A stretch of DNA of 40,736 nucleotides from Octopus bimaculoides. Its lineage: Eukaryota. Under the pieces are notes generated by a model. The model had not been told where the DNA came from. It saw nothing but the letters and a program-made list of their open reading frames with translations, and did no database searches. Within the stretch, counting starts at the first letter, position 1, and each line of letters begins with the position of its first letter. The stretch spans positions 30,238,084-30,278,819 of the forward strand of contig NC_068981.1 in the NCBI RefSeq assembly GCF_001194135.2, given 5' to 3'. Below are positions 7,125 through 35,665 of the stretch, piece after piece. A program made the translations under genes and the position numbers.

Positions 7125-7420
7125 TGGTAGGATTTTCGAGCGAGATCGTTGCCAGTGCCCCCGGACTGGCTCTTGTGCAGGTGGCACATAAGACACCATT
7201 TTGAGCGTGGCCATTGCCAGTACCGCCTGACTGGCCTTCGTGCGAGTGACACGTAAAAGCACCCACTACACTGAGTGGTTGGCATTAGGAAGGGCATCCA
7301 GCTGTAGAAACTGCCAAATTAGATTGGAGCCTGGTGTTGCCATCCGGTTTCACCAGTCCTCAGTCAAATTGTCCAACCCATGCTAGCATGGAAAGCGGAC
7401 GTTAAATGATGATGATGTGA
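7125..7420 (+). mobile_element. RTE LINE 3' end
   Basis: Ends ggaaagcggacgttaaatgatgatgatg. Inverted relative to the 5476 copy. Confidence 0.8.
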
Positions 7421-7543
7421 TGTCTTGATAAGAATACAGTCATACGGACCTTTCATTTTCTGGCATAGCCATAAGGCTGAAACATGTAAAAGAATTTCAA
7501 GATAAGAACCACTTCTAAATGTAAAGAAAAAGAAAAAACTTAC

Positions 7544-7749
7544 TTGAGCATTTGGTGTCCTTAATTCAGTCATTTCGTCTTCCATGCCATTAGCTCCTGT
7601 GTCATTTACTCTTTCTCTTGACCTAACTGGGGTGTCACCAGTCTGTATAGACTGCAGCCTTTGTGCAAATTGCAATGTGCGAAGTGTTTCAGTGAGATGC
7701 AACATACTTGGAGATACTTGAGTTATGAGTAAGGTTTTACTGTTTCCAC
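7544..7749 (-). CDS. KIFC3-like: Kinesin exon 13 (motor end)
   Basis: Acceptor caaacag, donor CAA|GTAAGT. (G)GNSKTLLITQVSPSMLHLTETLRTLQFAQRLQSIQTG...TPNAQ. Confidence 0.95.
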
Positions 7750-7829
7750 CTGTTTGCAGCAACAAAACAATACATAAGCTCTGTATATGTGTATGTGTTC
7801 ACACTGCACAATGTGGGTGAGAAAGAAAA

Positions 7830-8095
7830 TGTTGGATTCCTCTCGGGGGACTCACAGAGAAAAGACAACGAGTTGTACAATTTAGTTATTACATTTATTA
7901 TTTAATTACAGACAAAGAACGCACTCACCGAATGTTCGTCATTAATAAACAAGAATCATGTCCTCGCCATATATATCAATAACATTTAACTTTAACAGTC
8001 ATTCAAAACAACAATGAAACAAGGACCTCAGACGAACAACATTGAAACACAGGACCTCAAACAAACAACGAACAAATCCAGCAGTCCATATAACA
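7830..8095 (-). mobile_element. Probable solo LTR
   Basis: TGTT...AACA termini, identical 5-bp flanks GAAAA (7825-7829 and 8096-8100), minus-strand AATAAA at 7899-7894, and an internal ~30-bp tandem duplication. Confidence 0.65.
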
Positions 8096-8559
8096 GAAAA
8101 GATGAATTCAAATGGAAAGTTTAAGCTACTATTTTGTTCAACAACTGGTTCAATCTAATCAGCTGTATCAAATATAGTGAGAATAATATATATGATCAAT
8201 TATTCTTTTATCATAGAAAGAAACTATGAAATCAAATCTGCCTTGTATTGAGAAGTTGGAGCAAAAGTTTATTCTAATACATGGAATCTGTTATAACACA
8301 ACTAGTGATACAAAAGCATTTATATTGATAATTTTTTTTATTATTTATCTTGGCAGTTAACCCATTAAAACCAGCCATGTCTGGCCCAAATATTCTACCA
8401 GTTTTATGTTCAAATTGGAAGATCTAGCTTCTCACACCGACTCAATGTTATTCTAAAAATAATCACATCACTGAAATATCAGTAGTATGGGATAATGAAT
8501 AAATCTTGTCTAGAGAGAGAGTCATTCGCTTAGTCAAATGACTGAAACAAGCGAAAGAG

Positions 8560-8890
8560 CACTGTGGCCATGCTGGAGCATCGCATTTAGTCGAGCAAAT
8601 CGACCCCAGGACATTCTTTGTAAGCCTAGTACTTATTTTATCAGTTTCTTTTGCCGAACTGCTGAGTTACAGGGAGCTAAACACCAGCATCGGTTGTCAA
8701 GCGATGTTGGGGGAACAAACAGACATACGATGGGCTTCTTTCAGTTTCCATCTACCAAATCCATTAAAGCCTTTGATCAGCCCGAGGCTATCGCAGAAGA
8801 CACTCGCCCGAGGTGCCACACAGTGGGACTGAACCCAGAACCATGTGGTTGGTAAGCAAGCTACTTACCACACAGCCACTCCTGCACCTA
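8560..8890 (-). mobile_element. SINE family A, near full length
   Basis: Reverse complement of the family A sequence, with the head ending ccacacagccactcctgcaccta. Confidence 0.85.
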
Positions 8891-9516
8891 ATAATTTGAC
8901 ACACTCACTGGTCTGATTTCCACTTATTTTTACTAAAATTTTCACTGCATTTTTTGCAATAAGGCACTAAAAGAGTGACTCCTCAGACAAAATATGCTTC
9001 AACACACGAATTCATATAAAGAATTTTGCAAACCAAATACAAAAGTGAAATGAATAAGTTACATTTGAAATAATATGAATGCTAAAGGGTTAACGTATGA
9101 AATCGTTGAAGAGTATACAGGGTATACACTTAACAGGCCTGGCAGCCATGCATGACTTTTGTAGTCTTTACTTGACTGGGAAGGAAGAAATGATTGCAAC
9201 TGAAATGTCTGATCACAGGCCTGCTCAATCAAGAAGGATGACATACGACTTAACAGCTAAAGTCACTGAAATTTTCATATGCAAACCACATCACTTAACA
9301 TCGGTGTATCGGGCCAACATGGGATGGACAGTTTGACAGGATTGGGCAAACCAAAGGATTTCATTAAGTCCCAATATCTGCATTGGCATGGTCTCTAAAG
9401 CTGAACACCCTTTCTAATAACCACTTAAAGTGTCCTGAATAGATTTGTGCCAGGTTACGAGAAGCTAAAGTATGACAGAGACAGTATGAATGTCCAAACA
9501 TCTTTACAATGCTTAC

Positions 9517-9714
9517 CTAAAGAATCCTGGAGGAGATGAGTCAGCTTTGAATTCCGAAAGGGAATGTGAGATCTCTTAATTATTATGGCATTAAGAACAT
9601 CACAAAAAGTACTCAAAGATTTATTAATGAATCCAGCTTCTTTCAGTTGCTGACCATCTACTCCTGACTTTACGACATTTTCTGATCCTGCCAAATCAAT
9701 TAAATACAACTTGC
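9517..9714 (-). CDS. KIFC3-like: Kinesin exon 12 (switch II, helix 4)
   Basis: Acceptor acttttcag, donor TAG|GTAAGC. (G)[17 protein letters not shown]...[17 protein letters not shown](G). Confidence 0.97.
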
Positions 9715-9879
9715 CTGAAAAGTGACATAAAATTTTAGATTAATTTGCGTTTATTGTTTTTCCTTCAGCTTTTCAATTAAAAATTACATTGTTAGCATTA
9801 CAGATACAAAAACTAATCTAAATCAAGCCACCAAAGAGACTAGCACACAAGTTGAAACCAGCTCAATATGGCTATGGTT

Positions 9880-10110
9880 CTACAGTTCTATATTTAAGGG
9901 ATGAGGAATTATGTACTTTATTTACATCCGCACGGGATCACTGCCAGACCAGTTGTTTGGCTTCAATGCCGATGGCATGTAAAAAGCATCATTTGTGCGT
10001 GATTGTTACCAGCGTCGCTGTAGTGGCACGTGAACAAAACATTTGAGCAAGGTCGTTGCCAGTGCCACTGGACCGACTGCCGTGCAGGTGGCAGGTAAAA
10101 AAAACAAAAA

Positions 10111-10154
<44 letters not shown>

Positions 10155-10636
10155 ATACCATTTGAGCGTGGCCGTTGCCAGTACCTCCGAACTGGCCCTC
10201 GTGCCAGTGGCACGTAAAAGCACCCACTATACTATCGGAGTGGTTGGCATTAGGAAAGGCATCTAGCTGTAGAAACTGCCAGATCAGATTGGAGCCTGGT
10301 GCAGCCATCTGGTTCACCAGTCCTCAGTCAAATCGTCCAACCCATGCTAGCATGGAAAGGGAACGTTAAACAATGGTGATTTACATTTGATGGATATTTT
10401 CCTCATCTTGTTTGCTAACACGTTTCAGCTTGGCGTAGTTGTTTAGAGTGAGGGCTACTAACCCTAAGATTCCAAGTTCTATTCCAAGCAGTGACCTGAA
10501 GAATAATAACATCGAAAAATACCTTAGGAATGAGAACCCAGGTTCGAAATTTCCACAAGACACCTGATGAAGGCTGGAGGGTATATTAGCAGAAACTTTA
10601 AGGAACAAGATGACGAATATCCGTCAAATGTAAATA
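9880..10636 (+). mobile_element. Palindromic tRNA-headed element with hammerhead-type arm (copy 1)
   Basis: Inverted left arm 9882-9927 plus 10387-10430, tRNA-like head 10431-10493, right arm 10494-10636. Exact 12-bp TSD ATGGCTATGGTT at 9868-9879 and 10637-10648. Confidence 0.82.
9928..10378 (+). mobile_element. RTE LINE 3' fragment nested in the left arm of copy 1
   Basis: 8-bp TSD ATTTACAT at 9920-9927 and 10379-10386. Ends gaacgttaaacaatggtg. An internal A-run is expanded to about 55 nt. Confidence 0.82.
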
Positions 10637-11081
10637 ATGGCTATGGTTGCTAAGAGACCAGTGGAACCCTTCCACAAGTGAACACTAGTTCAATCCTCAC
10701 TGCCCCACTCAGGCAAAGTGTACAAGAGGTGAAATACTTGTGACCTGGATACACCTGCTGACAATACAGAAAGGTTTCCCTACATTACAAAAAACCTAGA
10801 AGATTTTGCAAAACCCCCAAGTAGCTCCTGCAGTTTCTGCACTGAGCTACTTTATTTCACCAATGTAAGACATGTATTTAAATAAAAATGATGAAATAGG
10901 AAATCAAGTTGAGTGATAGACATTTTCCTGTTACAAATATTAACTTTTTAAAGAGGCTGCAAATAGGTGGTGTTTGTTTAAAATTAACTAAAGTCACCAA
11001 TTTCACAACTAGAAGTTTTGCTAGAATTTATAGGCAAGTACAAAATATTGGCTTGGCCATGCATTTAAGCTGTTTGTTTTC

Positions 11082-11194
11082 CAGGGTTCTGGTTTCAGTC
11101 TGGCCATGTGATAACTTGGGCAAGTGTTGTCTATAGTCCCAAGTTGACAAAAGCTTTGCGAGTAGATTTGGTAGACAGAAACTGAAAGAAGTCC

Positions 11195-11224
<30 letters not shown>
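11082..11224 (+). mobile_element. SINE family A, partial, ending in (TG)n
   Basis: ttgggcaagtg...gatttggtagacagaaactgaaagaag followed by (TG)n. Confidence 0.65.
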
Positions 11225-11227
<3 letters not shown>

Positions 11228-11438
11228 ATCACATGATAATTGTAAACAATCATTCATTTCCAGTCTACTGTGAAACATAAGCCATGGGGAATCAGTCCTT
11301 TACTTGTAAAGAGAGAGAGGGTTTGTGACAGGAAGGGCATCAAGTTGTAAAGATTTTGCCTCAAATTCCAACTGACCTATGCAAGCATGGAAAACAATGT
11401 TAAAACAATATGGAAAAGCAGATGTTATATGGATTCAA

Positions 11439-11869
11439 NNNNNNNNNNNNNNNNNNNNNNNNNNNNNNNNNNNNNNNNNNNNNNNNNNNNNNNNNNNNNN
11501 NNNNNNNNNNNNNNNNNNNNNNNNNNNNNNNNNNNNNNNNNNNNNNNNNNNNNNNNNNNNNNNNNNNNNNNNNNNNNNNNNNNNNNNNNNNNNNNNNNNN
11601 NNNNNNNNNNNNNNNNNNNNNNNNNNNNNNNNNNNNNNNNNNNNNNNNNNNNNNNNNNNNNNNNNNNNNNNNNNNNNNNNNNNNNNNNNNNNNNNNNNNN
11701 NNNNNNNNNNNNNNNNNNNNNNNNNNNNNNNNNNNNNNNNNNNNNNNNNNNNNNNNNNNNNNNNNNNNNNNNNNNNNNNNNNNNNNNNNNNNNNNNNNNN
11801 NNNNNNNNNNNNNNNNNNNNNNNNNNNNNNNNNNNNNNNNNNNNNNNNNNNNNNNNNNNNNNNNNNNNN
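11439..11869. other. Assembly gap (others at 7058-7124, 15904-15913, 27335-27344, 36814-37461, 38362-38768)
   Basis: Runs of N. Confidence 0.99.
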
Positions 11870-11913
11870 ATATATATATATATATATAAAATAAGATAAA
11901 GTTATGTAGAAAC

Positions 11914-12043
11914 CTCTTGTTCTTGTATTTGTTAATACATTCCGTCCTTCCACTTCTACTAACAGCAATGTATGAGAGCGTGATGAAGCTGAATTCATAT
12001 TTGTTGAAGCTGTCACTCTATTTCTCTTCCCACGGGAATACAT
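11914..12043 (-). CDS. KIFC3-like: Kinesin exon 11 (switch I)
   Basis: Acceptor ttttttcaaag, weak donor GAG|GTTTCT. MYSRGKRNRVTASTNMNSASSRSHTLLLVEVEGRNVLTNTRTR(G). Confidence 0.92.
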
Positions 12044-12115
12044 CTTTGAAAAAAAAAAAACGAAAAAGGAATGAAAACAAAAACGAAAAAAAAAATTTTT
12101 TTTAAGCATTTTTAA

Positions 12116-12306
12116 CGCTTTCGATATCAACCCGGCTAAAACCACCTCTGGCTCTTGTTTTCATGTAATGTTTTTATAAGAAACAGTTACAATTTATGTT
12201 CTTAACTAGCTTAATTATACCTAAGTTATTTTACTAAATTCTTTGTTATATCTAAATTTAATTGAAAGAAACACAGCATCTCAAAATAAATACAGTAATG
12301 AAAGGG
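12116..12306. mobile_element. piggyBac-type MITE
   Basis: TTAA-cgcttt...aaaggg-TTGA. Internal blocks shared with 21163 and 28055. Confidence 0.7.
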
Positions 12307-13480
12307 TTGAAGCAAAGAAATAGAACTGGATGGTTGAAAAGTTATTTTTATCATTGAGGTTTAACAGCAGCTAAGCAATAATTTCCTTCAGACATGTGGT
12401 CCAAACTAATCCAAAAGACTGAGTGGTAAATACGACAATACTAAAAGCTTCTAGCAAAGGTGCAAAGTTATATAATGGAAATAGAATAGTTGATTAAGAT
12501 ACCACCAGTACATAACTGACACAATTCTATATTTTTGAGACAAGGAATTTATATTATGTGCTCTATTTACATGAGTCAGACTAGTGTCTACCCTACTGGC
12601 TGGTTGGTGATAGAATGTCAAATAAGATGCTTATTTTGCAATTTATGAGCTATAACATCATTAGCAATGAGCCTACTCCTTGTTCATTGCATATTGATTA
12701 GCAATACTAAGGATTTCATTTATGAGCACCATTACATTTGCTTCGTAGACAGATGACCACATCTTATTTCAGTTTCTGCAGTGGGATATCCTTATCACCA
12801 GCCACTTGTACTCAGTGTGTACCGAGTACATTTTATTATGGAACTAGCACTGTCATGTGCTTGACCAACAGATCAACACGTCTCAAACTGTTCATTTGCC
12901 AACCTCTCTACAATGTGTATTTGATGCAATTTGTGGTACCAGCACTTGTGTGGTTGCCACAAGTGCACCTGAAATAACTAGAGCATACAAAAGCCAAAAT
13001 GTAGTGAAAGCAACAGTTAAGATGAAGACACTAGTCCAAATAATATAGTTCATAATGCATTAATATTTATTCTTTCAAAGGTTAAAAAATATTTGTAGGA
13101 TTTGAATTCTGAGCAAAGGTTTAAACTGAATGCAAAAAGGGCCTTCTCATGATAGTTTACAGATCCTGAGGCTTACTGCACTTGATATTAAGGGACATTA
13201 TTGCTGTATAGTTAAGGCAATGGTCTGAGTAAATTACTTTTAGTTAAGATAGTAATGCATCTAAAATGTCTGGATCCCACTCGAGAAATAAAGTGCTTAG
13301 ACATCTTTGTATTTTAAACTGTTTGCTACCATATTTATTAATTCCCAGAAGGTATCAGCAAGAATTTAAACTAAACACGGCAATGTATATTATTCCTTTA
13401 GACATAGGTGTTCAATTGTAGTATTGCAGCACTACGAGTCACTAGTAATGCAATGGTGCTAATAATAACTTCTAATAGAC

Positions 13481-13710
13481 GGGCGGCGAGCAGGCAGAAG
13501 TATCAGCATGCCCGGCGAAATGCTTAGCTGTATTTCATTTGCTGTTATGTTCCGAGTTCAAATTCCGCAGAGGCCAACTTCACCTTTCATCCTTTCAGGG
13601 TTGATTAAGCAAGTACCAGTCACGCATTGGGTTGATGTAATTGACTTAATCTCTTTGCCTGTCCTTGTTTATCCCCTCTATATTTAACCCCCTGTGAGCA
13701 ATAAAGAAAT
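13481..13710 (+). mobile_element. tRNA-derived SINE, family B, full length
   Basis: ggcggcgagcaggcaga...gttcaaattcc...caataaagaaat. 14-bp TSD with 12/14 match (13467-13480 and 13711-13724). Confidence 0.85.
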
Positions 13711-14036
13711 AATTTCTAACAGACACAAGACCACAATTTCATGCCCGTTTTCTGTTTTTCATGGGTTGGACAATTCAGCAGGGGGTAGCCAGCCAGAGAA
13801 ATGTTATGCAACTATGTTTGCTTTGGAATCGGTTCTACAGTTTGATACCCTTCATTATGTCTACTTGTTTCCTGCTACTTTTACCCAGACAAAGCCAACT
13901 CCAGTAGGTTTGGAATTCAGAACAAAGAATTAAGTTTCAGTGTTATTTGGTCTGTGAGCCACAGTCTTCAATAATAAATCCTATATACAACAAGTCTATT
14001 CAACAAGAACATCTAAAGACACAAAGCATAACTAAC

Positions 14037-14136
14037 CTCATTCACTTCAAGCAATGAATTTGCTTTTTGACGGATTGAATTTTGTCCTTCGATGTTCCAC
14101 ACTTCAAGCCTGCTTTGTTCAGTACTCAAGAGATCC
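14037..14136 (-). CDS. KIFC3-like: Kinesin exon 10
   Basis: Acceptor tttttccgagccag, donor GAG|GTTAGT. (R)DLLSTEQSRLEVWNIEGQNSIRQKANSLLEVNE, phase 2 to 0. Confidence 0.9.
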
Positions 14137-14436
14137 CTGGCTCGGAAAAACAGAAAAGAGAAAAATGCTTTAGTCTGCCACATATATTAGACATCCCCAC
14201 AATACCTGACTACTTTATATATGGAAATTTTTGAGCAAAACATCCTTAACATGCCTAACATCACTGTCAACATACTGAGTGATAGAATAAAAACACTGAT
14301 TAATCTTAAGCAAAACTGGAGGTTTTATGTATTTGTAACATTCACATACAAATGTAATTTTTAAGAAAAAAATCTAGAAAACCTCTTTTTTAGATGTTTG
14401 TTAAATAAAGAAATCAATGGACCTTTGAGAACCAGA

Positions 14437-14782
14437 GGGTCTGCATGGGTGTGGTAAGAAGTTTGCTTCCCAACTACATAACTGAGTTCAGTCCTGGTGC
14501 ATGCTACCTTAGGCAAGTGTATACTGTAGCGTTGGGCTAACCAAAGCCTTGCCAGTGGATTTGACAAACGGAAACTGGAAGAAGCCCTTCATGTGTGTGT
14601 GTGTGTGTCCCACCACCGCTTGACAACTGATGTTGGTGTGTTTACATCCTTAACTTTGCAGTTTGACAAAAAGAGACCAATAGAATAAGTGCCAGGCTTT
14701 AAAAAAGTACTGGGGTGGGGTCGATTCGTTCAACTTTAATATGGTGCCCCAGCATGGCCACACTGACTGAAACATGTAAAAC
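14437..14782 (+). mobile_element. SINE family A, diverged
   Basis: gtgtggtaagaagtttgcttccc...cagcatggccacactgactgaaaca. Confidence 0.75.
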
Positions 14783-15580
14783 AAATGTATCTAAAATGTG
14801 TTGGTATGATGAAGTTAAATGTTAAAAAAGTTTATTTTTCCTACATATTTATACAAGGTTTTTTGACTGTATAAATACGTGCAAGTGTGTATTTATTCTG
14901 ATATTGTAAGAATTAAAAAGAAATGCCCCCCCACTTGTCAGTTCCAACAAAAATATGTGACCCTCACCATTGGGTTTTGTAAGCATTTGTTCGAGTGAAA
15001 ACACTCGTTAAAATTAAACATTGTAGTATAGTTGTCGCACGTATAGCATTTGTAAATTATTTTGTAAGTACTTTTATAGGTACGAGGAATAAAACGGAAA
15101 GAAAATATTGAGAACCTTCAGCTAAAGGGCAATAATTTCTACAATATAAATAGTTGTCACCCTTGATATCAGTGGATAAATTATTTCTAGCCAAACAGGT
15201 TAAGATGGTATATTTAGAACAGTTCAAATTAATGGAATAGTCTTAAAACACTACAGACACTCAGGAGATGAAACCTATCTATACTAGACACTGAAAAAGC
15301 TATTTTTATTTAAATACATAAAACGGATGTTATTTAAAATTCTGCGAAAATCTCAATTCTTAGATAAGACCGTCATCTTTCGAAATTGAGATCAGTTGAT
15401 CATTCGTGTATCACTTTCAACTATAGACAGTATTCCTCTTCAGACAAATTTCTTTTGTTTCCAATATATTTTACATTCAATATATAAGTTGCTAAGTAAA
15501 CATTTAGCTATCTCAATGTCATAATAGATGTGGTCAAGGTTATTAAATCATGACAGGATTCCATAAAGAAGTTGTAACTT

Positions 15581-15740
15581 CAGCCATCATCGTTTAACGT
15601 CTGCCTTCCATGCTGGCATGGGTTGGACGGTTTGACGGGAGCTGGCGAACCAGAAGACTGCACTAGATTTCGGTGTGTTTTAGCATGGTTTTTACAGCCC
15701 TTCCTAACACTGACCACCCTGCAGAATGTGCTTACACAGG
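15581..15740 (-). mobile_element. RTE-type 3' tail
   Basis: catcatcgtttaacgtctgccttccatgctggcatgggttgga. Confidence 0.75.
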
Positions 15741-16104
15741 ATTCGATACCAATTGTCATTTTTATTGTGATTATAGCTACAAGTAAAAAAAAAAATTTCA
15801 GATGATAAACTGAATTGGTGAGGTAAGTGTTTGTCATGTCCTTGGCAGGAAATTTACGTTTCCTTACAATCTATCTACCTCCATTGAATTTTTTTTTTTT
15901 TTTNNNNNNNNNNATTTTTTTTTTTTTTTTTTTGGTGGTGGGGATTCCAGAATCTGAGAATCACCTGAATTGTTTAAATGATTTGCCTGTTACATAAACA
16001 ATGTAAGAGAATTTGGAGCCAAATGCTTGTTTTAAGGGATCTGTTAGTTCATGCAGACAATATAGTTCAGTACTCATTTGGTAAATGACATGATCTGAAT
16101 TTAC

Positions 16105-16232
16105 CTGATTTGTTCATTATAAATTTCAAGCATGCTGACATAGACGGAATAAATCCAGTCATGTTTTGCAGAAATTTCATTAAATAATTTATCGAGAGCT
16201 CTTGGATTGATCCCCGGGTCAGTCAGGGTACC
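16105..16232 (-). CDS. KIFC3-like: Kinesin exon 9
   Basis: Acceptor tattttag, donor CAG|GTAAAT. GTLTDPGINPRALDKLFNEISAKHDWIYSVYVSMLEIYNEQI(R). Confidence 0.96.
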
Positions 16233-16474
16233 CTAAAATATAGATTAAAAAAAAGAAAAGATTTATTAGTTCTGCTGGTTAGATATTTGGTGATTGAGGT
16301 TTTGACATACTTTTTGTCAACATGTGTCATCAAATACAGTATATTACACTAAACAATGCACGTCATTTTCATACATACAATATCTTAAGTTGCCTGTAAA
16401 AAACCCCCACACTTTCTGAATTCCTTTTCGAAGGTCTTCAACACAAAAATAAGCAGAAATAAAACCTAACTTAC

Positions 16475-16579
16475 TTCCATCGTGTAAGTTTTTCCTGATC
16501 CAGTTTGGCCGTAAGCCACAATACATACATTGAAGCCATCAATACAGGAGGTAATCAAAGATTCTACTTCTTCAAACAA
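16475..16579 (-). CDS. KIFC3-like: Kinesin exon 8 (P-loop)
   Basis: Acceptor ttaattccag, donor GAA|[41 protein letters not shown]. Confidence 0.97.
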
Positions 16580-16844
16580 CTGGAATTAAAAATTGCATTT
16601 ATGATATCAACTTATTGATTAATAGATTGAATTATGCAGATAACACTTTCTCAAAAATGAAGCAATTGCATCAATTTCTCAAAAACCCTAAGATTAATTA
16701 TAAACATAGTATCCTTGATGACTGTTTCCCTTTAATTGAATGAAATTTGTAAAACCCTCTTCCTGATCTTATGCTAACATTTTACAGGGTTCAGGATGGG
16801 GTATTGTCAATTGAATTTACCAAGATTTCTGATGTGGCTAGGTG

Positions 16845-16995
16845 TAGGCATAGTCGGGTGGTAAGAAGTTTGCTTCCCAACCACAGTTTTGGGTTCAGTC
16901 ATAGAGCATGACACCTATAGTTCCAAGCTAACCAAAGCCACGAGTGGATTTGGTAGACAAACTGAAAGAAGTGTGTGTGTGTGTGTGTGTGTGCA
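16845..16995 (+). mobile_element. SINE family A, partial
   Basis: ggtaagaagtttgcttcccaacc...gtggatttggtagacaaactgaaagaag followed by (TG)n. Confidence 0.65.
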
Positions 16996-17089
16996 TGCAA
17001 ATCTCTCCTTGCCTTATCATGACAGTTGTAAACAAGTGTCATTCATGCAAGAAGTGTCAGTTTCCAATTGTCCATGAAAACCTATCTGG

Positions 17090-17889
17090 TCATCATCATC
17101 ATCGTTTAACATGTTTTCCATGCTAGCATGGGTTGGACGATACAACTGAGAACCGGATGGTTGCACCAGGCTCCAATCTGATCTGGCAGAGTTTCTACAG
17201 CTGGATGCCCTTCCTACCGCCAACCACAGAGTTTAGTGGGTGCTCTTACATACCACTGGCATGAGGGCCAGTCTGGCAGTACTAGTACTGGCAACGGCCA
17301 CACTCAAAATGGCGTTTTTTACGTGCCACCTGCACAGGAGCTAGTCCAGCGTCACTGGCAATGGCCTCGCTTGAATGTATTCTAACGTGCCACCGGCACA
17401 AGTGCCAGTAAGGTGACGCTGGCAATGATAATGCTTGGATGGTGTTGTCAGTGCTACACTGGCACAGGTGCCAGTCATCAAATATGGTTCAATTATGATT
17501 TCACTTGCCCCAACAAGTCTTCACAAGCAGAGTTTAGTGTCCGAAGGAGAGTTTGGCATGGGTGTCAGTCGTTGAATCTGGTTCAATTTCGATTGCCTCA
17601 ACAGGTCTACGCAGAGTGTAATGTCCAATGAAGTAAAAATACGAATAAGTGAGCTGACTACACTCCTGGCAGAGGCCACGGATTATGGTCTCACTTGGCT
17701 TGCCGGGTTTTCTCACACACAGCATATTTCCAAAGGTCTCGGTTAGAAGTCATTGCCTTGGTGAAGCCTAATGTTTGCAAGTTGTGCTTCACCACCTCAT
17801 CCCAAGTCTTCCTGAGTCTACCTCTTCCACAGGTTCCCTCAATCGCTCGGGTGCGGCACTTTTTCAGACAGCTATCCTCACCCATTCTT
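17090..17889 (-). mobile_element. RTE LINE 3' part (ORF2 C-terminus plus 3' UTR and (GAT)n tail)
   Basis: EDSCLKKCRTRAIEGTCGRGRLRKTWDEVVKHNL...NRDLWKYAV is a typical RTE C-terminus, with its stop at 17691. Confidence 0.88.
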
Positions 17890-18257
17890 ATTTCTTTATT
17901 GCCCACAAAGAGCTAAACAGAGGGCACAAACAAGGACAGACAATCGGATTAAGTTGATTACATCGAACCAGTGTGTAACTGGTACTTAATTGATTGACCC
18001 TGAAAGGATGAAAGGCAACGTTGACCTCGACAGAATTTGAACTCGGAATGTAAAGACATGAAATACCACTAAGCATTTCACCTCGCGTGCTGATGTTTCT
18101 GCCAGCACACTGCTTTACCACAGTTTTTGTCTACTGAGTTCACTCCCAAGTCTTTGTTTGATCCAGGGTTATCATGTAGAAATTCACCCAAGGTAATACA
18201 CAGTGGGACTGAACTTGAAACTATGCATTTCGCCCTGCACACTAACGTTTCTGCCAG
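17890..18257 (-). mobile_element. Composite SINE insertion (B head + A-like fragment + full B) interrupting the LINE
   Basis: Flanked by ctcacccattctt (17877-17889) and ctcatccattctt (18258-18270), a 12/13 match. Confidence 0.75.
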
Positions 18258-18380
18258 CTCATCCATTCTTGCCACATGACCATACCAGTGCAATCGTCTT
18301 TCTTGCACACCACAACTGATGCTTCTTAGGTCCAACTTTTCTCCCAAGGTACTTACACTGTCGAGTATGCACACTGGGGA
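18258..18380 (-). mobile_element. Upstream continuation of the same RTE ORF2
   Basis: TLGEKLDLRSISCGVQERRLHWYGHVARMDE joins EDSCLKKC across the insertion. Confidence 0.85.
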
Positions 18381-19159
18381 AAATATTACCTTACTTCGAA
18401 GGGAAGGGAAGGCAACAGGATGGGCATCTGGCCATAAAAAATCTGCCTCCACAAATTTTGTCTTACCTTTGTGAGTATGGAAAAGGTGGACATTAAAAAA
18501 TTATATCACTCGGGAGGGATGAAAGGAAGCGATTTGGCAGAGACATTGTTGCAGTATTTGTTCCAGATCAGTGTTCAGATTGTGTCGAAGTCAATAAAGT
18601 AGCAGTCAAATATTAGATTTATTATACTCTCGTATCATCTATAGTGCAGAATGTAACTTGATAGCATGGAGGTCCTATGCTGAAACCAAGAAGCTTCTAA
18701 ACTTGCAAGGTGTAAGCTGAAACCTGAAAGGCAAAGTCAGCTGTTTAAAAACTGATTCATTGTTAGTTCTATTGTAAGTTGAAGTGTTATAACCAGGTTG
18801 TGCAGTTGTGCAATAAAACTTGACATCAAGAATTTAATAGTTCTCGTTTTTAAATAACTCTTCCACAATCTGGTTCATTTTTAGTACAATTACAGATCAA
18901 GTTACTTGCTAGATGTTTACAACGCCAAAATCTAACTTTGGTATACAAAACTTGTTTTACTACAAAAAAAAAGACATAAAATGCAGAAACTACATTTATA
19001 TGTAGTTCACAGTACAAACTGTGTGTAGAGTTTTATATTTTTGATGTAAAAGTTTGCACTAAGATTGTTCTCAGGCAGCCAAGGGTCAGATGGGGTCAAA
19101 CTCAATGCACCCTTAGAGTGAGTGAGTATAGAGGTGCAGTTATGAAACACTGACATCAG

Positions 19160-19470
19160 TCACACCTACAATCTCACTTGGCTTGATGGCCTTCTCAAGC
19201 AGGGTATATTGCCAAAATTCTCAGTCACTTGTCACTGCTTCTGTAAGGCCCAAAGTTTGGAGGTGCCAGTTACAAGACATTGGCCACGACTGATTTTACT
19301 TGGCTTGATGGGTCAAGCACAGGATATTGCCCAATGTTCAAGGGGTGCTTTTTATATGTCACCAGCACGAGTACCAGTTACACCACACTGACATCAGCCA
19401 CAACTGTGATTTCACTTGGCTCGATAGGTCTTCTAAAGCATGGTATATTGCCAAAAGGTCTCCGTAACGT
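19160..19470 (-). mobile_element. Diverged RTE 3' UTR-like fragment
   Basis: tttttatatgtcaccagcac and gatttcacttggct blocks shared with 17250-17690. Confidence 0.5.
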
Positions 19471-19596
19471 GTCTGTGTTCAATAGTCATTTAGTCTTGGA
19501 TTCATTTTGTTCTAATTTGAATCCTATAAAAAATATTTGCTTTCACAATGAGATATTTCATTACAAAACAGTGATTGAAGTAAACTGATAACTTAC

Positions 19597-19772
19597 CTGA
19601 GACTGTGTACAATCTTGAGGAAAAACTAAACTCATTTCAAAATTAAATATTTTCCTTCTCTGTTTTACAAGTACAACATCCTTATTGTTTGGACCAATAT
19701 ACACACAATCTTCATTTGCTCCTTCGATATTTGTGTCTAATGGCCGAATCCGACAAAACACTCGAATATTAC
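19597..19772 (-). CDS. KIFC3-like: Kinesin exon 7 (motor start)
   Basis: Acceptor ttaattag, donor CAG|GTAAGT. (G)NIRVFCRIRPLDT...VFPQDCTQSQ, 176 nt. Confidence 0.95.
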
Positions 19773-21162
19773 CTAATTAAGTAAATATACCTTTGTTTAA
19801 AGTACTAAAAAATCTTTTTTTTTTTAAAGATGTATCAACATTTGACAGATCAATGTATCTTTTGAAGTACATGAGGTTAGATTTAACATGTTTAAATTGA
19901 AGGTAACTTATCTAGTAAGCTACAATGTTATGTTTAAGTAAACAGATGCAACAAAAAAATGTTAGCAGTAAACTATTTCGATAGAGCAACACAAAATGTG
20001 TCAAACTACAATGTTAGGCTTTCATTTGTATGTCTATGGTTGTAGCCTAATGTATACACAGACGGTCCTGTATGAATTTGGATCACATAAATTCACACAG
20101 ATGAGGTATGGCTAATCCTAAAAAAAAAAAAAGGTTATAAATTTCCATAATGCCCAAATTTAAATTAGTTTGTACAGGGGTGGGCAAAAGTAGATATACA
20201 ATTGCTTGTGGGTCAAACATTTTCTTGAACTCCCAGAAATAGAGAGGGGGGAAGCAAAAAAAAAGGGCTAATGAACTAGACATCTCCGATAGATCCCTTA
20301 GTTGACTAATGAATTAGTTAAAAAAATAGAGAAATAGAAAGATCATTTCACTTGTTAAGCGCCTGTAGACTTAGTTTTGTTCACCCCTGTATATTTTCAT
20401 TGTACTTTCAATGGAAACTAATACTCTTTGGTACCAATTTCTGCATTCTAATTATGAGCAAAATGTCTTACATGCAAAAGAAAAAAAAATTACAATTTAA
20501 AGCATTTCCTCCCATACTGAGATGGGTTGGATGGATGCAGTCCCATAACATCTGAATTCTTCCCAAGACCTAATCCTAAAACTGACCAAACTATAATTTC
20601 CAAAATGGTCCTTGCCACAGCCAAGCTAGAGCACCACCATTTGTTTAACTTACAATAATTTCTCATCTAATAGACAGTCTCCATTCCAGTTACATTAACT
20701 TAATGCTTCCTCCCTTACATATACACCTTCCTCTCAATACCTTTGAGGCCCTGTTACCATTTCACTCCTCTTGTGTTCAATTTCCCATAAATTAATATTT
20801 CCTATTAAACTCCTTACTATTAATCTTATTCTTGAAAAAAAAAAAAAAATGCTCTGCAATCAAACAGTTACATTTATAAGAGCCAATGAACGATCTATGT
20901 AGTGAAGCAACAGGCTAGAAATAATAGCCAAATCTACCTCTAATCGTATTCTATCATCTTTAAGAGAAATGCGTGGCCTGAATGCCAGTTATAGGTTTGT
21001 TCAATCAGGGATAACCTAGGGCTAAACAGCTTACTTTTAGTCAGTTGAAGTAACAATCTGCTTAATTTAGCCACCTTCATCTAGTAATTATGTTAAAATA
21101 AAAACTGACCTGACAGAAACAGCAGCCAAATCTTTCTACAGAATCACACCCAAGTGTCATAA

Positions 21163-21364
21163 CCCTTTTAATACCAACCCGGCTGAAACTGCCTCTGTAG
21201 TACAAATATCTTGCTTACATAAGTTTTGAATTAAAATCTTTCAAACCTTAGTCACAATTTATGTTTCTAACACTAGCTTAACTGGTTTACTAAATTCTTT
21301 GTTATATATAAAATCAATTGAAAGAAACACAGAACCTCTCAAAATAAATACAGTGACAAAAGGG
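21163..21364. mobile_element. piggyBac-type MITE
   Basis: ATAA-CCCTTTT...AAAAGGG-TTAA, 202 bp. Confidence 0.78.
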
Positions 21365-21624
21365 TTAAAACTCAATAGCTGACAATCCTAGATATAACCA
21401 AAAATGAACAAAAGACAAGATCATGAGAATGTTTTGGCCAAACCAACAACTGCTGGTGCTGAAAGAACAAATGAAATTAGAATAGTAAATTCTTTTTTTT
21501 TTTTTATTATCTAATATGAATTTAGCAAATTACAAAATAAAGACCCTAAATACTGAAAGGAGTTTTATGCTTATATTAAGTATTAAAAAGAAACAAAAAT
21601 GCATTTATATGTAAGAAAACTTAC

Positions 21625-21736
21625 CTTTAATCTTCATCAGTTCATTATGATATTTTCTTCTGAGAGCCATTTCTTGATTATATCGAGATATTAATTCAGT
21701 ATCTGGGTTGTGATGTTTCCTTACCATATTCATAGA
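21625..21736 (-). CDS. KIFC3-like: Kinesin exon 6 (neck)
   Basis: Acceptor tttttgcaag, donor AAG|GTAAGT. SMNMVRKHHNPDTELISRYNQEMALRRKYHNELMKIK(G), a kinesin-14 neck. Confidence 0.93.
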
Positions 21737-21810
21737 CTTGCAAAAATTGAAAATATTTTTTCAAAAATAGTATACTTCCTTTCACATTTGTTATAACAAA
21801 AACCTTTTTG

Positions 21811-22201
21811 TACATTATTTACAATTGATGGATATTTGTCCTCATCTTGTTTGCTGTTAACACAACGTTTCAGCTGATATATCCTCCAGCCTTCATCAGG
21901 TATCTTAGGGAAATTTCGAATCTGGGTTCTCATTCCTAAGGTATTTTTCAATATTATTATTATTATTCAGGTGGGCATATGGCATAGTGGTCAAGAGCGC
22001 AGTTCAATTCCAGGCAGTGACCTGAATAATAACATCGAAAAATACCTTAGGAATGAGAACCCAGGCACAAAATTTCCCCAAGACACCTGGTGAAAGCTGG
22101 AGGGTATATCAGCCGAAACGCGTTAACAACAAACAAGATGAGGACATATTCGTCAATTGTAAATAATGTACATAATACCTCATCTCTTAAATATAGAACT
22201 G
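21811..22201 (+). mobile_element. Palindromic tRNA-headed element with hammerhead-type arms (copy 2)
   Basis: Inverted arms about 21809-21972 and 22020-22172, around a 47-nt spacer with A box (21980-21990) and B box (22002-22011). TSD caaaa(a/g)cctttttg at 21797-21810 and 22202-22215, a 13/14 match. Confidence 0.85.
21859..21904 (-). ncRNA. Minimal type I hammerhead ribozyme motif (Penelope-type), intact core
   Basis: Minus strand reads GAUAC-CUGAUGA-A-GGCUG(gaggauauau)CAGCU-GAAACGUU-GUGUU: stem I, stem II, conserved core and palindromic ACGU stem III. Activity untested. Confidence 0.7.
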
Positions 22202-23554
22202 CAAAAGCCTTTTTGCTTCAAATGAAATTACAAAAAACAAACAAAATGCTATAATTACAGGAACTCTTCTACTACAGCCCTGGGCTGACCAATGCCCCCA
22301 GTGAATTTGGTTGGCAGAAGGTGTGAAAGTCTTGTGAGCATGCACATGAGTGATACTCCTCTCTTTCCACTGCTTAACAATCAGTGTTGGTTTGTTTGTA
22401 CTCTAACAGTACTTACTGGTTCAGCAAAAGAAACAGAATAAGTACCAGACTTTAAAAAAAAAAAAACTTCTGTATTAGGTTATTTGTATGACTAAGATTC
22501 TCCAAAGCAGTGTCCAGCATAACCGTAGTGTAATGACTGAAAAAAAAAGATAAAAAATAGACAAATTCAGAACTACTCTTCTTTGCCTTATGACATTAAA
22601 TGATGAAAATGACCGTTTCTTATGTTGACAATCAGTGATAGAAGAAAGATTAGAATGTTTGCAGGTTTTCCTACGGTGATAGAGATTTTCAGCTTAAACA
22701 TTTGTAAAGTTAGTGGCTGTAGGAATAATTAAAAAGATATTAAAACAGGAGGAAACAATAGATTCGAGAGAGAGTTACTGTTCTCGAGAAAAGACATTTG
22801 GTGTTTTGAGCCAAGTCTGGAAGAGGAGACAGTGGAGTTGGGAAGAGAAACAAAGGAGGTGATGAGTCAGCTTAGACAGCAAGCTATAAAAATATCTAGT
22901 TCAGAGAAGCAGAAGCCATTTTAGAAGAGAGAATGAAGAAACAGTATGTCTGTGGACTAGTTATTGTTATACCCCTAGGTCAGCATTGACCAAGCAGATA
23001 AAAAGCATTCCATCCAAGACAATTCTTTGTTTTCCCTACATGGAATGAGCTCAAGGTCCTTTTACCCAATGCAGGATTAAAATAGATTTGATGTTATTTC
23101 TAGCAAATTGAACAATCCCGCAGAGATTCTAATTGCCTCAACCTCTCCTTTTCCAATAGTCAGTAATATGGATTCCTTTTCTATTTGGTCTTGGATGTTT
23201 ATGTGTGTGTAATCACAACATTATCCCAAATAAACAAGCAATACTTCAGTGTGGGGCTTCAAATTTAGTAAAGGATAAGCAAGTGACTATAACTGAAGCA
23301 TTTCCTAGCTTTAGAGAAGAGTTTCAATTTTTACAATGCAGTTTTGTGTGTGTGTGTGTGTGTATGTTTGTGTGTGTAAGAACACAAGTGGGTTGAGGCT
23401 TTTTTCCATGATGTAATTGATGTGTTTAATAAAAAATGTGTCTGAAACAACTATTGGACTTCAACGCATGTTATTTTACATCATACCAACATTGAATCTA
23501 GAACTTACAGTGGACCATGAAACTGCACGTTGGAGTTTGTGATTTTACATATAG

Positions 23555-23702
23555 ATGGTTGGCATTAGGAAGGGCATCCAGCTGTAGAAACTCTGCCAAA
23601 TTAGACTGGAGCCTGGTGTTGCCATCCGGTTTCACCAGTCCTCAGTCAAATCATCCAACCCATGCTAGCATGGAAAGCGGACGTTAAACGATGATGATGA
23701 TG
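23555..23702 (+). mobile_element. RTE-type 3' tail
   Basis: ggttggcattaggaagggcatcc...ggacgttaaacgatgatgatg. Confidence 0.8.
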
Positions 23703-23984
23703 TTTACCTTGAGTATAGTGATCTGTCCATGTGCAGGGAAATGGTAGGACAAGTCCATATATACTGCTAATAGACATATGATGTTCTCAATCCTAAACTG
23801 ATGCCTTATTAAAATACCTTGATTCAAATGGATCATGCAAATTATTTATGCGCACACACACACACACACGCACACAGCTCCAGGTTCAGACCCACTGCAT
23901 GGCAACTTGGGCACATTTCTATTATAGCCTTAGGCTGACCAAAACCTTGAGTGGATTTGGTAGACAGAAACTGAAAAGCCCATC

Positions 23985-24400
23985 TGGGTCTCATGGAGGC
24001 AAAGTTCCTTTTGAGCAATAGGTCTCATGGAGGCAAAATGGCAGAGTTCCTCTTGAGCTTTGGGCCTGATGGAAGCAAAGTGGCAGAGTTCCATTTGAGA
24101 GTTGGGCCTCACAGAGACAATAACTAAGACCTTTGGCATTATGTTGTGCTTGAGAAGCAAACCCATTAAGTCAAGGAAAATCAGTCGTGACAGATACTGG
24201 CGTCACAAATTGGCACCTGTGTCAGTGGCATGTAAATGCACCCCAGTATTACACTATTGGAGTGGTTGGCGTTAGGAAGGGCATCCAACTGTAAAAAATT
24301 ATGCCAAATCAGACTTGAGTCTGGTGTAGCCTTCCAACAGCCAGCCCAGCCATGCCATCTAACCCATGCCAGCATGGACAATGGACGTTAAATGATGGTT
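23985..24400 (+). mobile_element. RTE-type 3' UTR fragment with internal ~30 bp repeats
   Basis: Repeated ggtctcatggaggcaaa units. Ends ccatgccagcatggacaatggacgttaaatgatg. Confidence 0.7.
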
Positions 24401-24831
24401 GTGTGTGTGTTTGTCTGCACTGCCATTGCTCGACAACTGGTGATGTGCTTATGCCCTAGCATAGGCACAGTCTAAGGACTGAAACAAGGCACCATATAAA
24501 TATGGCCCTACGGTTTTTTAATGTTTTCACTGTCCAATTTTTCCTGTCTTGGTTTGTGTTTGCCACCTTGGAATCCTGTTTAGTGGGTTAATCCACTACT
24601 CAGGAAGAAACTATTCTAAGAGTGCATCCTGCCTTATCTTCGAAATGCCTAGTTTAGAATAGATGCAGCTGATGAAGGAATAATTCCATAAGTGGCTTGT
24701 TTGTTTTCCTATGTGTTAGTTCTGTTGTCTGTAAACAAAGTCAGTTTTGTTTTTATGTTCCAGTTCATTTTTCTAACGTCCTGTACCCAAATATGCATCT
24801 ATATACACATGTAGATATGTACATGCATATG

Positions 24832-24871
<40 letters not shown>

Positions 24872-24988
24872 GAAAGACTCAGAAAATGAGCTTATACTGA
24901 AGGTTACTTTGCCAAGTGTGTACCTACTTCAGTAAGGTACTCACTGCTGTTAATATAAAATGAAAATGAATTTATAAAGTAGCCTTAC

Positions 24989-25540
24989 CTGTTGTTCTAT
25001 CCCATCACATGTTTGTAGAAATTGTTCAGTACAAAGAGATGCAAGATTATGGTAATTTTCTAACTGATACAAAAACCTTGAAAATAATTCCGGCGAAAGT
25101 TTCCCGTTTCCAGAACAGGCATTCTCATTGGTACAAGTCAGTGGAGACTGGACAGAATTTAAATTGCTTTCCAAAATGCGAGGAGATGGCATTTCATCAC
25201 TTGTTTCTGTTCGAGGACTTTCTAAATTTTCCTCTACAGAAGGAGTCATAGGAGAAGTTGCAGAACTTAAACAATTTTGGTAGTTTACAGTTTGAGAACT
25301 ACATGCATTGGCTGTGTCATGTGCAGAGAGGTCATTAAAACGGTTCTGAAATTCCAGCTCTGTCTGACAAACTTTGTCATCATATCCAGACACAGCAAGA
25401 CAACGACATCTCTCGTATGTTAATTCTGTCTGACAAATTTTATCTTCATACTTGGGTAAAACTTTAGCACTAGCCTCTGGATTAGTTAAAATCAGTGTGT
25501 CATCTCCTGGTGAATATCCTGCAGTTTCTGTGTTAGTCAT
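24989..25540 (-). CDS. KIFC3-like: Kinesin exon 5 (large low-complexity tail exon)
   Basis: Acceptor ttccaaacag directly before ATG, donor CAG|GTAAGG. 552 nt open frame MTNTETAGYSPG...DGIEQQ, matching track ORF 24950..25540. Confidence 0.85.
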
Positions 25541-28422: not shown

Positions 28423-29735
28423 CACTGTGCAACACTCAAAAAGGTACAAGAAATCTGGCCATTTTTGTATGCAAAATGACATGGGAAATCCATTTCTGGC
28501 AGTCTTTTTGTTGAATTAGGCATGGTTTCTACAGAATTGTCACTGTATAACCTTTGTCATTATTAAATAAAATTCTCTTCCGCATTGTAAAATGGGTTTC
28601 AACCCAGGGCTAGAGACCAATCTTAGTAACACCTACATGTAATTCAAAGCCTGTGTTTAATGTTATTTTTTCATCTTTCAGATCTCATTTGTTTTTAACA
28701 ATGAGTACAAGACAGTGCAAAAATGATCCAAACAGATTCTGTTATATCTGTGGGGAATTGACTTTTGCTAAAGTGCAGTGCAGTGCAGTATTACACACTA
28801 TATCAAGAAAATATACAAGGCGTACTTTGATTGTAACTTAGGAGACCAGGATAAGTCATGGGCTCCTCATGTGTGTTACCTTACATGTGTGAAGGCATCT
28901 AGTGCCTGGTATGCAGGAAAAAAAATGTTCACATGAAGTTTGGTGTGTCAATGATTTGGCATGAGCAGAAAGATCACTAATGATTGCTATTTCTGTCACC
29001 ATGACTTTACAGGCTGCACTACAGCAAAGGAAAAGAAACACATTGTTTACTCAAATTTGCAATCAGCAATGCACCAAGTAGAGCACTCAGAAAATTTACT
29101 TGTGCCCAAATCTCCAGATCAAGAAATGCAGAGTTCCAGCAGTGCTAATGAACATTCCAGTGGTGAATGTGTGGAGCCCAATGATCCAGAAAATGAGAAT
29201 AAACCAATACCATTTTCTCAAGAGGCTCTAAATGACTTATGCAGGGATCTCTATTTAACCAAAGAGAAAACTGAGTTTCTGGCATCAAAGCTTCAAGAAC
29301 ATAATCTTCTTGAGAAAAGAGTGAAGGTAACACTGCACAGAAAACGTACAGAGGATCTGCTTGCATTATTCCCCATGAAGGATGACTTATGCTTTCATAA
29401 TGACATCACTGAACTTTTTGAGCAACTGGAAATACCATATAAAACCAACTGGCAACTTTTCATAGATGCATCCAAGGACAGCATCAAAGCTGTTCTGCTA
29501 CACAATGGTAACACTGCCTTCTGTTCCCACAGCTTATATAGCACAACCATGAAAAAATTATGAAAATCTGAAAGCCATTCTAACAAACATACAGTATGAT
29601 GACTATACCTGGCATATTTATGCAGATTTTAAGGTTGTCGTCATGCTTACTGGCCTTCAGCTTGGCTATACTAAATTGTGCCGCTTCCTGTGCTTATGGA
29701 ATTCCAGAGCAAGAGCTTAACATTATGTATGCAAG
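28423..29735 (+). mobile_element. Decayed DNA transposon with Cys-rich transposase (Chapaev3/CMC-like)
   Basis: Left end CACTGTGCAACA. ATG at 28701: MSTRQCKNDPNRFCYICGE, then frameshifted GDQDKSWAPHVC, NDCYFC, FSQEALNDLCRDLYLTKE, FIDASKDSIKAVLLHNGN and LTGLQLGYTK. The superfamily name is from recall and needs checking. Confidence 0.75.
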
Positions 29736-33930: not shown

Positions 33931-34039
33931 TAAACAATCAAAGGCACCAAATCAGAACAAGAACAAATGCTACAAGGTATCCAGTTTGATTTTGTTATAG
34001 TTCTGCCAATCAACCATGTTGAATAGAATCATTTTTATT

Positions 34040-34190
34040 TACATTATTTACATTTGACGGATATTTGTTGTCATCTTGTTTGTTCTCAACACGTCTCGGC
34101 TGATATAACTTCCAGCCTTCATCAGGTGTCTTGGCGAAATTTTGAAGCTGGGCTCTCATTCCCAAGGTATTTTTTGATATTATTATTCAA
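34040..34190 (-). mobile_element. Single arm of the hammerhead-bearing element (copy 3)
   Basis: Minus strand GACAC-CTGATGA-A-GGCTG...CAGCC-GAGACGTGTT (core GAAA changed to GAGA). No tRNA head adjacent. Confidence 0.8.
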
Positions 34191-34239
34191 TAAATACCAA
34201 ACTTAATTACCAGGATTAATTTGTTTGATTAAAACCCTC

Positions 34240-35475: not shown

Positions 35476-35665
35476 TAGGTGGCCCCAAAATATGTTTACA
35501 GTTATTCAACCTCTTTTGCATTCATATTTTAACAGTTTAGATCTTTATAAAAAAAAAATGAAATCATGCTAATTTAGTTAATTGTAAGAGAAATTTAAAT
35601 GTAATAAAATGTTGAAATTTAAACCGCCTACGTTATAACTGTAAACCTACTTTTGGGCCACACTA
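35476..35665. mobile_element. Tc1-type MITE
   Basis: About 28-bp imperfect TIRs: taggtggccccaaaatatgtttacagtt / aactgtaaacctacttttgggccacacta. A related single end occurs near 20173-20205. Confidence 0.65.

Follow-up and report, generated by a model that had tools for sequence, protein, structure and literature searches.

How did a tRNA-like sequence in an intron of Octopus bimaculoides come to be enclosed by two long inverted arms with hammerhead ribozyme motifs, and is the resulting palindrome an element in its own right? The locus lies in a stretch of 40,736 nucleotides (NCBI RefSeq assembly GCF_001194135.2, contig NC_068981.1, positions 30,238,084 to 30,278,819), which was analysed at its full length and is hereafter called the window; coordinates are counted from its first base. 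The palindromic insertion itself, unit A, occupies 21797-22215. We conclude that it is probably one old insertion of a SINE-like (short interspersed element), non-autonomous retroposon family that carries a hammerhead of the type found in Penelope-like elements (PLEs), mobilised most likely by a PLE. The palindrome, in turn, is a trace of how the insertion was made.

The general layout of unit A was first described in a first-pass annotation of the window, and much of it withstood closer analysis. In a gapped alignment the two inverted arms agree at 87.7% of 154 aligned bases and differ by 16 transitions, 3 transversions and 3 small indels; they lie on either side of the proposed 47-nt spacer (21973-22019). 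Folded as RNA, the unit forms one continuous long hairpin (dG -209.5 kcal/mol, z = -27), with 0/100 shuffles as good. The proposed 14-bp target site duplication (TSD) also stands; its two copies are identical at 13/14 positions, a level reached by 8 of 2715 random flank pairs drawn from the same window (~0.3%). Between the TSDs, 21811-22201 is a head-to-head pair, in which a main copy on the plus strand (head, body and tail) abuts an inverted copy with neither head nor tail. The arms are thus not joined tail-to-tail, as had been suggested. With its arms 12% diverged, its head missing the anticodon arm and its same-sense hammerhead core mutated, unit A is an old insertion and a dead copy.

A second, independent insertion in the window, unit B, repeats this arrangement. 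It has the inverted 5'-truncated partner, the 31-nt tail at one end only and the TSD around the whole unit, so the combination of head, inverted arm and TSD does co-occur elsewhere, as the first-pass annotation had proposed to check. The length of the inverted arm differs from case to case: it is 162 nt in A, 88 nt in B and ~220 nt in L001, a contig from another sequencing project in which two full copies, heads included, lie head-to-head. Solo 5'-truncated copies have no inverted arm. Because the arm length varies, unit B is built like unit A and the tail is one-ended, the palindrome belongs to the insertion event and not to the family unit, and the earlier idea that it is the element's own structure was not borne out. 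Since the TSD embraces the whole unit in both A and B (14 bp and 12-13 bp, respectively), each inverted pair arose in a single integration.

In the family unit, a tRNA-like head of ~70 nt is joined by an (AAT)n linker to a body of ~160 nt, which carries the hammerhead near its 3' end. The unit ends at the 3' side in ...TGTAAATAATGTA, followed in some copies by the 31-nt tail. We found four to five copies in the window and two loci elsewhere, all of them 3'-anchored and with variable 5' ends. A 20-mer taken from the arm was counted four times in the window but not once in shuffled sequence, and a scan of the metagenome collection with the 20-mer conserved in all four window arms found no match. 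Of the four head-less copies, three (the left arm of A at 21960-21972, solo copy C at 34180-34192, and contig L006 at 60-100) begin in the variable linker, (AAT)n/(GAT)n, that joins head and body, and not at random positions. This may reflect a separate head-less module of ~160 nt, or a reverse transcriptase (RT) that stopped at the structured head.

A protein search with the translated repeat returned three matches from a single frame, namely the 51-aa protein P0001, annotated in O. bimaculoides, and contigs L001 and L006, both from another sequencing project. A chimeric query of all other repeat frames gave no match in the protein database, and exact-protein look-ups of P0001 and two open reading frames (ORFs) of the window gave no record. 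The head-to-head pair of L001 was assembled independently in five runs of one project (L001-L005; Logan, SRR11869384-94). Should these be RNA-seq runs, the palindromic unit would be transcribed.

Each pair has the tail at one end: in A the main copy bears it (22171-22201), in B the inverted arm (9883-9913, minus strand, 29/31 identical). The tail recurs in diverged form at 12522-12552 and is encoded in peptide P0001. In both units the tail-less partner arm ends in ...AATAATG(TA). The tail segment CCUCAUCU, CCUCAUC(U) as RNA, pairs with AGAUGAGG ~45 nt upstream, so that a 3' hairpin of the form AGAUGAGG(AA) / (UU)CCUCAUC(U) is predicted in both tail-bearing copies (22125-22201 in A, and 9883-9927 + 10380-10415 in B). 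The "short" 3' end of the partner arms falls in the loop of this hairpin, which may act as a recognition or priming structure for the RT.

A CTGATGA...GAAACG motif had been reported in each arm. It is present in the left arm (minus strand, 21899 down to 21859), while the right arm has CTGGTGA (22087-22093) upstream of GAAACG (22115-22120). The left-arm motif (21904-21859, minus strand) reads GAUAC-CUGAUGA-A-[GGCUGG...UCAGCU]-GAAA-C G U U followed by GUGUU. It comprises the 5' strand of helix I (21904-21900), the CUGAUGA box (21899-21893), an unpaired A (21892), the helix II hairpin (21891-21872), GAAAC (21871-21867), G16.2-U16.1-U17 (21866-21864) and the 3' strand of helix I, GUGUU (21863-21859). 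The predicted cut lies after 21864, between GAAACGUU and GUGUU. Helix II has at most 6 bp, G-U pairs at both ends included, and helix I has 5 bp (GUGUU/GAUAC); the palindrome ACGU spans 15.1-16.1, with U at position 17. A minimal-hammerhead descriptor, written after the published minimal hammerhead ribozyme (min-HHR) of PLEs, had a single match in the window, this left arm, and none in either 200 randomised windows or 40 Mb of random sequence matched in composition.

The features that set PLE hammerheads apart are a base between A9 and 10.1, a G10.1-C11.1 pair, palindromic 15.2/16.2 positions and a short helix I (Cervera & de la Pena, 2014; PMC4209133). Judged by these four features, the last two read in the register of the left arm, the octopus motif would be a PLE-type minimal type I hammerhead. 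The extra A between A9 and 10.1 is present in every copy. The G10.1-C11.1 pair (GGCUG/CAGCC) is preserved in copy C and recovered in the majority consensus; unit A has G-U at this place in its left arm and A-C in its right arm. Across the copies the core has decayed variously, to CTGGTGA, GAGAC, AAAAC or CTGACAA, and has suffered a deletion in B. An intact ancestral ribozyme is plausible from these alignments, though not proven. With a palindromic helix III of 4 nt, the motif could be expected to cleave only as a dimer, if at all. The two motifs of unit A lie on opposite strands and are unable to dimerise within one transcript. A transcript of unit A consequently holds one ribozyme motif and its complement, which favours the long hairpin over the catalytic fold.

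Both RNA polymerase III (Pol III) promoter boxes reported in the spacer were confirmed. The A box TGGCATAGTGG (21980-21990) matches TRGCNNAGTGG at 11/11 positions, and the B box AGTTCAATTCC (22001-22011) matches the consensus GGTTCGANNCC at 9/11. In the full head of copy B the boxes (A box 10/11, B box 9/11) start 44 nt apart, the canonical distance in tRNA genes. The 47-nt spacer of unit A is the same head minus ~23 nt, corresponding to the anticodon arm, and because of this deletion its boxes start only 21 nt apart. Such a spacing is unlikely to work in a type 2 Pol III promoter. The boxes and the family head are thus real, while the copy in unit A, for which a tRNA promoter had been claimed, is probably a dead promoter. 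In both heads-plus-bodies the sense strand lacks a T4 run (the antisense strand has a T5), which is weak evidence compatible with Pol III read-through. The two ends of the head also show acceptor-like complementarity. The putative derivation of the head from a tRNA rests on this complementarity, the boxes and their spacing, and not on a tRNA model.

What kind of machinery leaves such products? According to Craig et al. (2021; PMC8557442), PLE insertions are 5'-truncated and carry a further 5'-truncated copy, inverted, at their 5' end; only one of the two ends bears a tail, of 30-40 bp, and the TSD varies in length. Goubert et al. (2022; PMC8969392) repeat this pattern. We infer PLE machinery because the octopus insertions reproduce this published signature and their body carries a PLE-type hammerhead. 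Target-primed reverse transcription would have proceeded from both nicked target strands, with one cDNA beginning at the 3' terminus of the RNA, tail included, and a second starting 31 nt inside it. Extending inward, the cDNAs would have met in the middle and been joined. A PLE enzyme combining RT and GIY-YIG endonuclease most likely supplied the machinery, and the hammerhead body module was probably borrowed from, or is shared with, a PLE terminal repeat. The earlier proposal of a non-autonomous element copied by a PLE therefore holds for the tRNA-type head, the minimal hammerhead and the PLE-like insertion architecture, which is repeated at 9883-10639. The palindromic, double-hammerhead design that went with it does not hold.

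The alternative that survives best, though we consider it unlikely, is an ordinary tRNA-SINE dependent on a long interspersed element (LINE). The pairs would then stem from twin priming by the RT of a non-PLE LINE, and the hammerhead-like motif would be a chance occurrence or vestigial. LINE RT fragments do occur in the window (RVT_1 at its start), the short 3' end of the element resembles a repeated 9-mer, (TGTAAATAA)2, reminiscent of some LINE/SINE tails, and Rfam makes no hammerhead call; nor was a PLE seen among the selected window ORFs inspected. However, L1-type twin priming yields inverted and direct segments that do not overlap, whereas both arms here cover the same sequence. Neither the one-ended 31-nt tail nor the complete set of PLE-type hammerhead features would be expected from it, and the element resembles none of the LINE 3' ends in the window.

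Much less probable is a retrozyme-type element, in which hammerheads process a circular RNA and the genomic copies are PLE-mediated reintegrations. Animal non-LTR retrozymes with type I hammerheads have been proposed as non-autonomous PLE derivatives (PMC7229834; bioRxiv 10.64898/2026.07.22.740005), which lends the idea some appeal. The material examined contains no head-to-tail tandem copies, however, and with a single sense hammerhead per transcript strand, both ends of a monomer could not be cut. The octopus unit also has a Pol III head, which retrozymes do not have.

The inverted pairs could also be two independent, adjacent SINE insertions in opposite orientation, or the outcome of a later local inverted duplication. 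The family is dense enough to lend this some weight (~1 copy per 10 kb in the window), and each arm of unit A resembles copy B (90%) at least as well as it does the other arm (87.7%). Even so, we regard it as very improbable, since the TSDs flank the whole units and not single arms, the abutting head-to-head arrangement recurs at three loci (A, B and L001), and none of the other repeat families in the window is arranged as a close palindrome of similar size. Least probable of all is a miniature inverted-repeat transposable element (MITE) or foldback DNA transposon, for despite the long inverted termini, the flanking direct repeat and generic matches to MITE-derived plant miRNA hairpin models, the inverted portion changes length between loci and is absent in solo copies, the ends are asymmetric with a tail on one side, the TSD length is not fixed, and the copies, anchored at the 3' end and truncated at the 5' end, have an internal Pol III head.

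Returning to a PLE-mobilised SINE-like family, several observations weigh against it. The family description is based on only about five independent insertions. No GIY-YIG domain or PLE RT was found among the selected window ORFs inspected, a genome-wide search for the partner not having been made, and the family copies examined include no direct tandem, such as the partial tandem (pLTR) that is the commonest PLE arrangement. ARAGORN, run on the window and the loci, and the Rfam tRNA model recognise no real head; ARAGORN draws a cloverleaf (anticodon ACT) only for a hand-assembled consensus head at a relaxed threshold. The hammerhead is intact in only 1 of ~8 copies, and the 3 nt that create the cleavable GUU/G site and helix I are found in 3/7. 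Minimum free energy folding of monomer and dimer, as well as cofolding, does not favour the catalytic fold. Finally, the suggested check against Rfam hammerhead models (e.g. Hammerhead_1) gave no match, either in the whole window at the gathering threshold or in three sub-regions at E <= 10. This miss is expected, because the motif has no helix III hairpin. The only Rfam matches in the window are generic long-hairpin miRNA models, which reflect the palindrome.

Table. Coordinates of the two inverted-pair insertions, further family copies and the adjacent host exon in the window.
Feature	Position	Strand	Basis or remarks
Unit B, whole sister insertion	9871-10652	+	Same architecture as unit A
Unit B, TSD GCTATGGTTCTA	9871-9882		12/13 with GCTATGGTTGCTA
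Unit B, inverted arm with tail	9883-9927 + 10380-10429	-	Joined parts collinear with 22112-22201 of unit A
Nested SINE of another family inside the unit B arm, ~452 nt	9928-10379		Own 7-bp TSD TTTACAT; interrupts the inverted arm
Unit B, main copy with full head, no tail	10430-10639	+	Alignment
Unit B, TSD GCTATGGTTGCTA	10640-10652		12/13; both TSDs abut independently defined ends
Copy E, short 5'-truncated copy; ~55-nt 3' fragment plus diverged tail (12522-12552)	12522-12575	-	nhmmer E = 9e-4
Host exon, kinesin-14 neck, ...RRKYHNELMKIK	21625-21736	-	Translation
Unit A, left TSD CAAAAACCTTTTTG	21797-21810		13/14 to right TSD; abuts left arm
Unit A, left arm; inverted head-less, tail-less body copy from the (AAT)n head/body junction to ...TGTAAATAATGTA	21811-21972	-	Alignments; nhmmer E = 3e-47
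Intact minimal type I hammerhead motif (predicted)	21859-21904	-	Sole descriptor match in window
Unit A, tRNA-like head of main copy, ~23 nt (anticodon arm) lost	21973-22023	+	Alignment to full heads of copy B and L001
Unit A, right arm; main-copy body in same orientation as head	22020-22170	+	nhmmer E = 5e-62 for head + body
Decayed main-copy hammerhead; CTGGTGA (A6 to G), A-C mismatch 10.1-11.1, GAAACGCGTT, no helix I	22087-22124	+	Direct reading and alignment; fails descriptor
Unit A, 31-nt 3' tail CATAATACCTCATCTCTTAAATATAGAACTG, right arm only	22171-22201	+	Recurs at 9883-9913 and, diverged, 12522-12552
Unit A, right TSD CAAAAGCCTTTTTG	22202-22215		13/14 to left TSD
Copy C, solo head-less copy starting at the (AAT)n junction; CTGATGA but GAGAC	34035-34192	-	Alignments

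Unit A is intronic, and the 3' splice site of exon 21736-21625 follows 73 nt downstream of its left end. The exons of the host gene, a kinesin-14 (KIFC3-like, C-terminal motor), span 7364-25540 on the minus strand, and the motor exons lie further downstream than the neck exon. Pfam Kinesin matches were obtained for ORFs near 7.4-7.8 kb and 11.4-12.1 kb and for one more reading frame, and the best named homologues are KIFC3-like; a large N-terminal kinesin exon probably occupies 24950-25540. A search for kinesin homologues, aimed at the orthologous intron, returned no cephalopod orthologue. As unit A sits in an intron of a minus-strand gene, the host pre-mRNA holds the whole hairpin, with the intact left-arm hammerhead motif in sense.

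The window as a whole has ~36% GC, is rich in SINEs and contains assembly gaps. Its N runs total 1573 bases (e.g. 11.4-11.9, 36.8-37.5 and 38.3-38.8 kb), and repeats adjacent to these gaps may be mis-joined. The SINE nested in unit B contains repeated units beginning CATTTGAGC...GTTGCCAGT, with an internal poly(A) tract at 10097-10153. Two other short, MITE-like palindromic units, unrelated to the family, lie at 815-1079 and 35479-35661; one has ~75-nt arms around a ~120-nt spacer, and the other has 27-nt terminal inverted repeats 129 nt apart. The RVT_1 fragment (E = 1e-13) is in the first long reading frame near the window start. An ORF at 18078-18452 (minus strand), which contains ...RRLHWYGHVARM... 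and has no Pfam match, presumably resembles the C-terminus of a LINE RT. A 200-aa ORF at 28961-29563 (plus strand), with a weak RT_RNaseH_2 match only (E = 0.003), is one that we take to resemble a widespread transposon-associated protein.

Unit A amounts to a ~160-bp RNA hairpin of the perfect type in a kinesin-14 intron, and from its predicted fold it is likely a substrate of ADAR or of small-RNA pathways. O. bimaculoides has an exceptional load of long double-stranded RNA (dsRNA) and ADAR hyper-editing (PMC5625713), and editing of this hairpin would be a reasonable expectation. If our reading of the family is true, its inverted pairs would supply introns with dsRNA ready-made. No repeat class of octopus genomes is larger than the SINEs, most families of which are unclassified (PMC13282606; PMC8967140). 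It is conceivable, though doubtful, that the octopus harbours a sizeable class of PLE-mobilised tRNA-headed SINEs that routinely form head-to-head snap-back pairs, and that such palindromes are a major source of the unusually abundant, perfect long dsRNA behind the exceptional A-to-I hyper-editing of octopus transcripts.

A SINE family with PLE insertion scars would also extend the concept of a SINE and its partner from LINEs to PLEs in molluscs; a PLE partner is currently argued for vertebrate retrozymes. Units A and B would then be compact, TSD-delimited natural examples of a poorly understood kind of PLE product, the inverted copy plus one-ended tail. PLEs are present and expanded in octopus (PMC13282606; PMC8967140). 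We found no published description of this family, or of a PLE-dependent SINE in cephalopods, in a literature survey that left Repbase and Dfam unqueried, and a full-text literature search for the sequence strings of the element gave no match.

The closest relatives by description are Sm-alpha and Sj-alpha of Schistosoma. These SINE-like retroposons combine a type I hammerhead with a Pol III head derived from a tRNA, which in Sm-alpha is tRNA-Gln-like (PMC6765202; PMC2770079). Like the octopus family, they are short and non-autonomous. Their ribozyme, whose helix III is weak, is active as a dimer or within multimeric transcripts; the octopus motif likewise has a weak helix III, with dimer activity only predicted. 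The original work on the two elements is said to be that of Ferbeyre et al. in 1998 and Laha et al. in 2000. The differences, compared by description only, are that Sm-alpha has a canonical hammerhead detectable by Rfam-type searches and often occurs in tandem arrays, whereas the octopus family has the minimal PLE-type motif, is Rfam-negative and occurs in a mollusc as dispersed single or inverted-pair insertions.

Minimal hammerheads in PLE terminal repeats have been described (PMC4209133), reportedly also by Lunse et al. in 2017. The octopus motif resembles the PLE min-HHR in its CUGANGA and GAAA boxes, the unpaired base before helix II, the G10.1-C11.1 pair of the consensus and, as read in the left arm, the short helix I and the palindromic 15.2/16.2 positions that allow helix III only in a dimer. 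It differs in having a helix II of 5-6 bp, against 7-8 bp, and in lying within a ~230-nt tRNA-headed unit, not beside an ORF for RT and endonuclease. S. mansoni has dual min-HHRs 100-700 bp apart on opposite strands (PMC4209133).

As insertions, units A and B share with PLEs the 5' truncation, the inverted 5'-truncated copy abutting the 5' end, the one-ended tail and the variable TSD, but the family has no coding region and no partial tandem (pLTR) was seen. Animal non-LTR retrozymes are also small, AT-rich and non-autonomous and carry type I hammerheads, and it has been proposed that they rely on PLEs (Cervera & de la Pena, 2020, PMC7229834; Li et al., 2026, preprint). They form head-to-tail tandem repeats and circular RNA and have no Pol III head, while the octopus family has neither tandems nor two ribozymes in the same sense. 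The first-pass annotation had presented the architecture as a possible novelty; however, SINEs with hammerheads, PLE hammerheads, PLE-derived retrozymes and inverted, tailed PLE copies have all been described, and the octopus family is a further example of these known kinds of element, not a new class.

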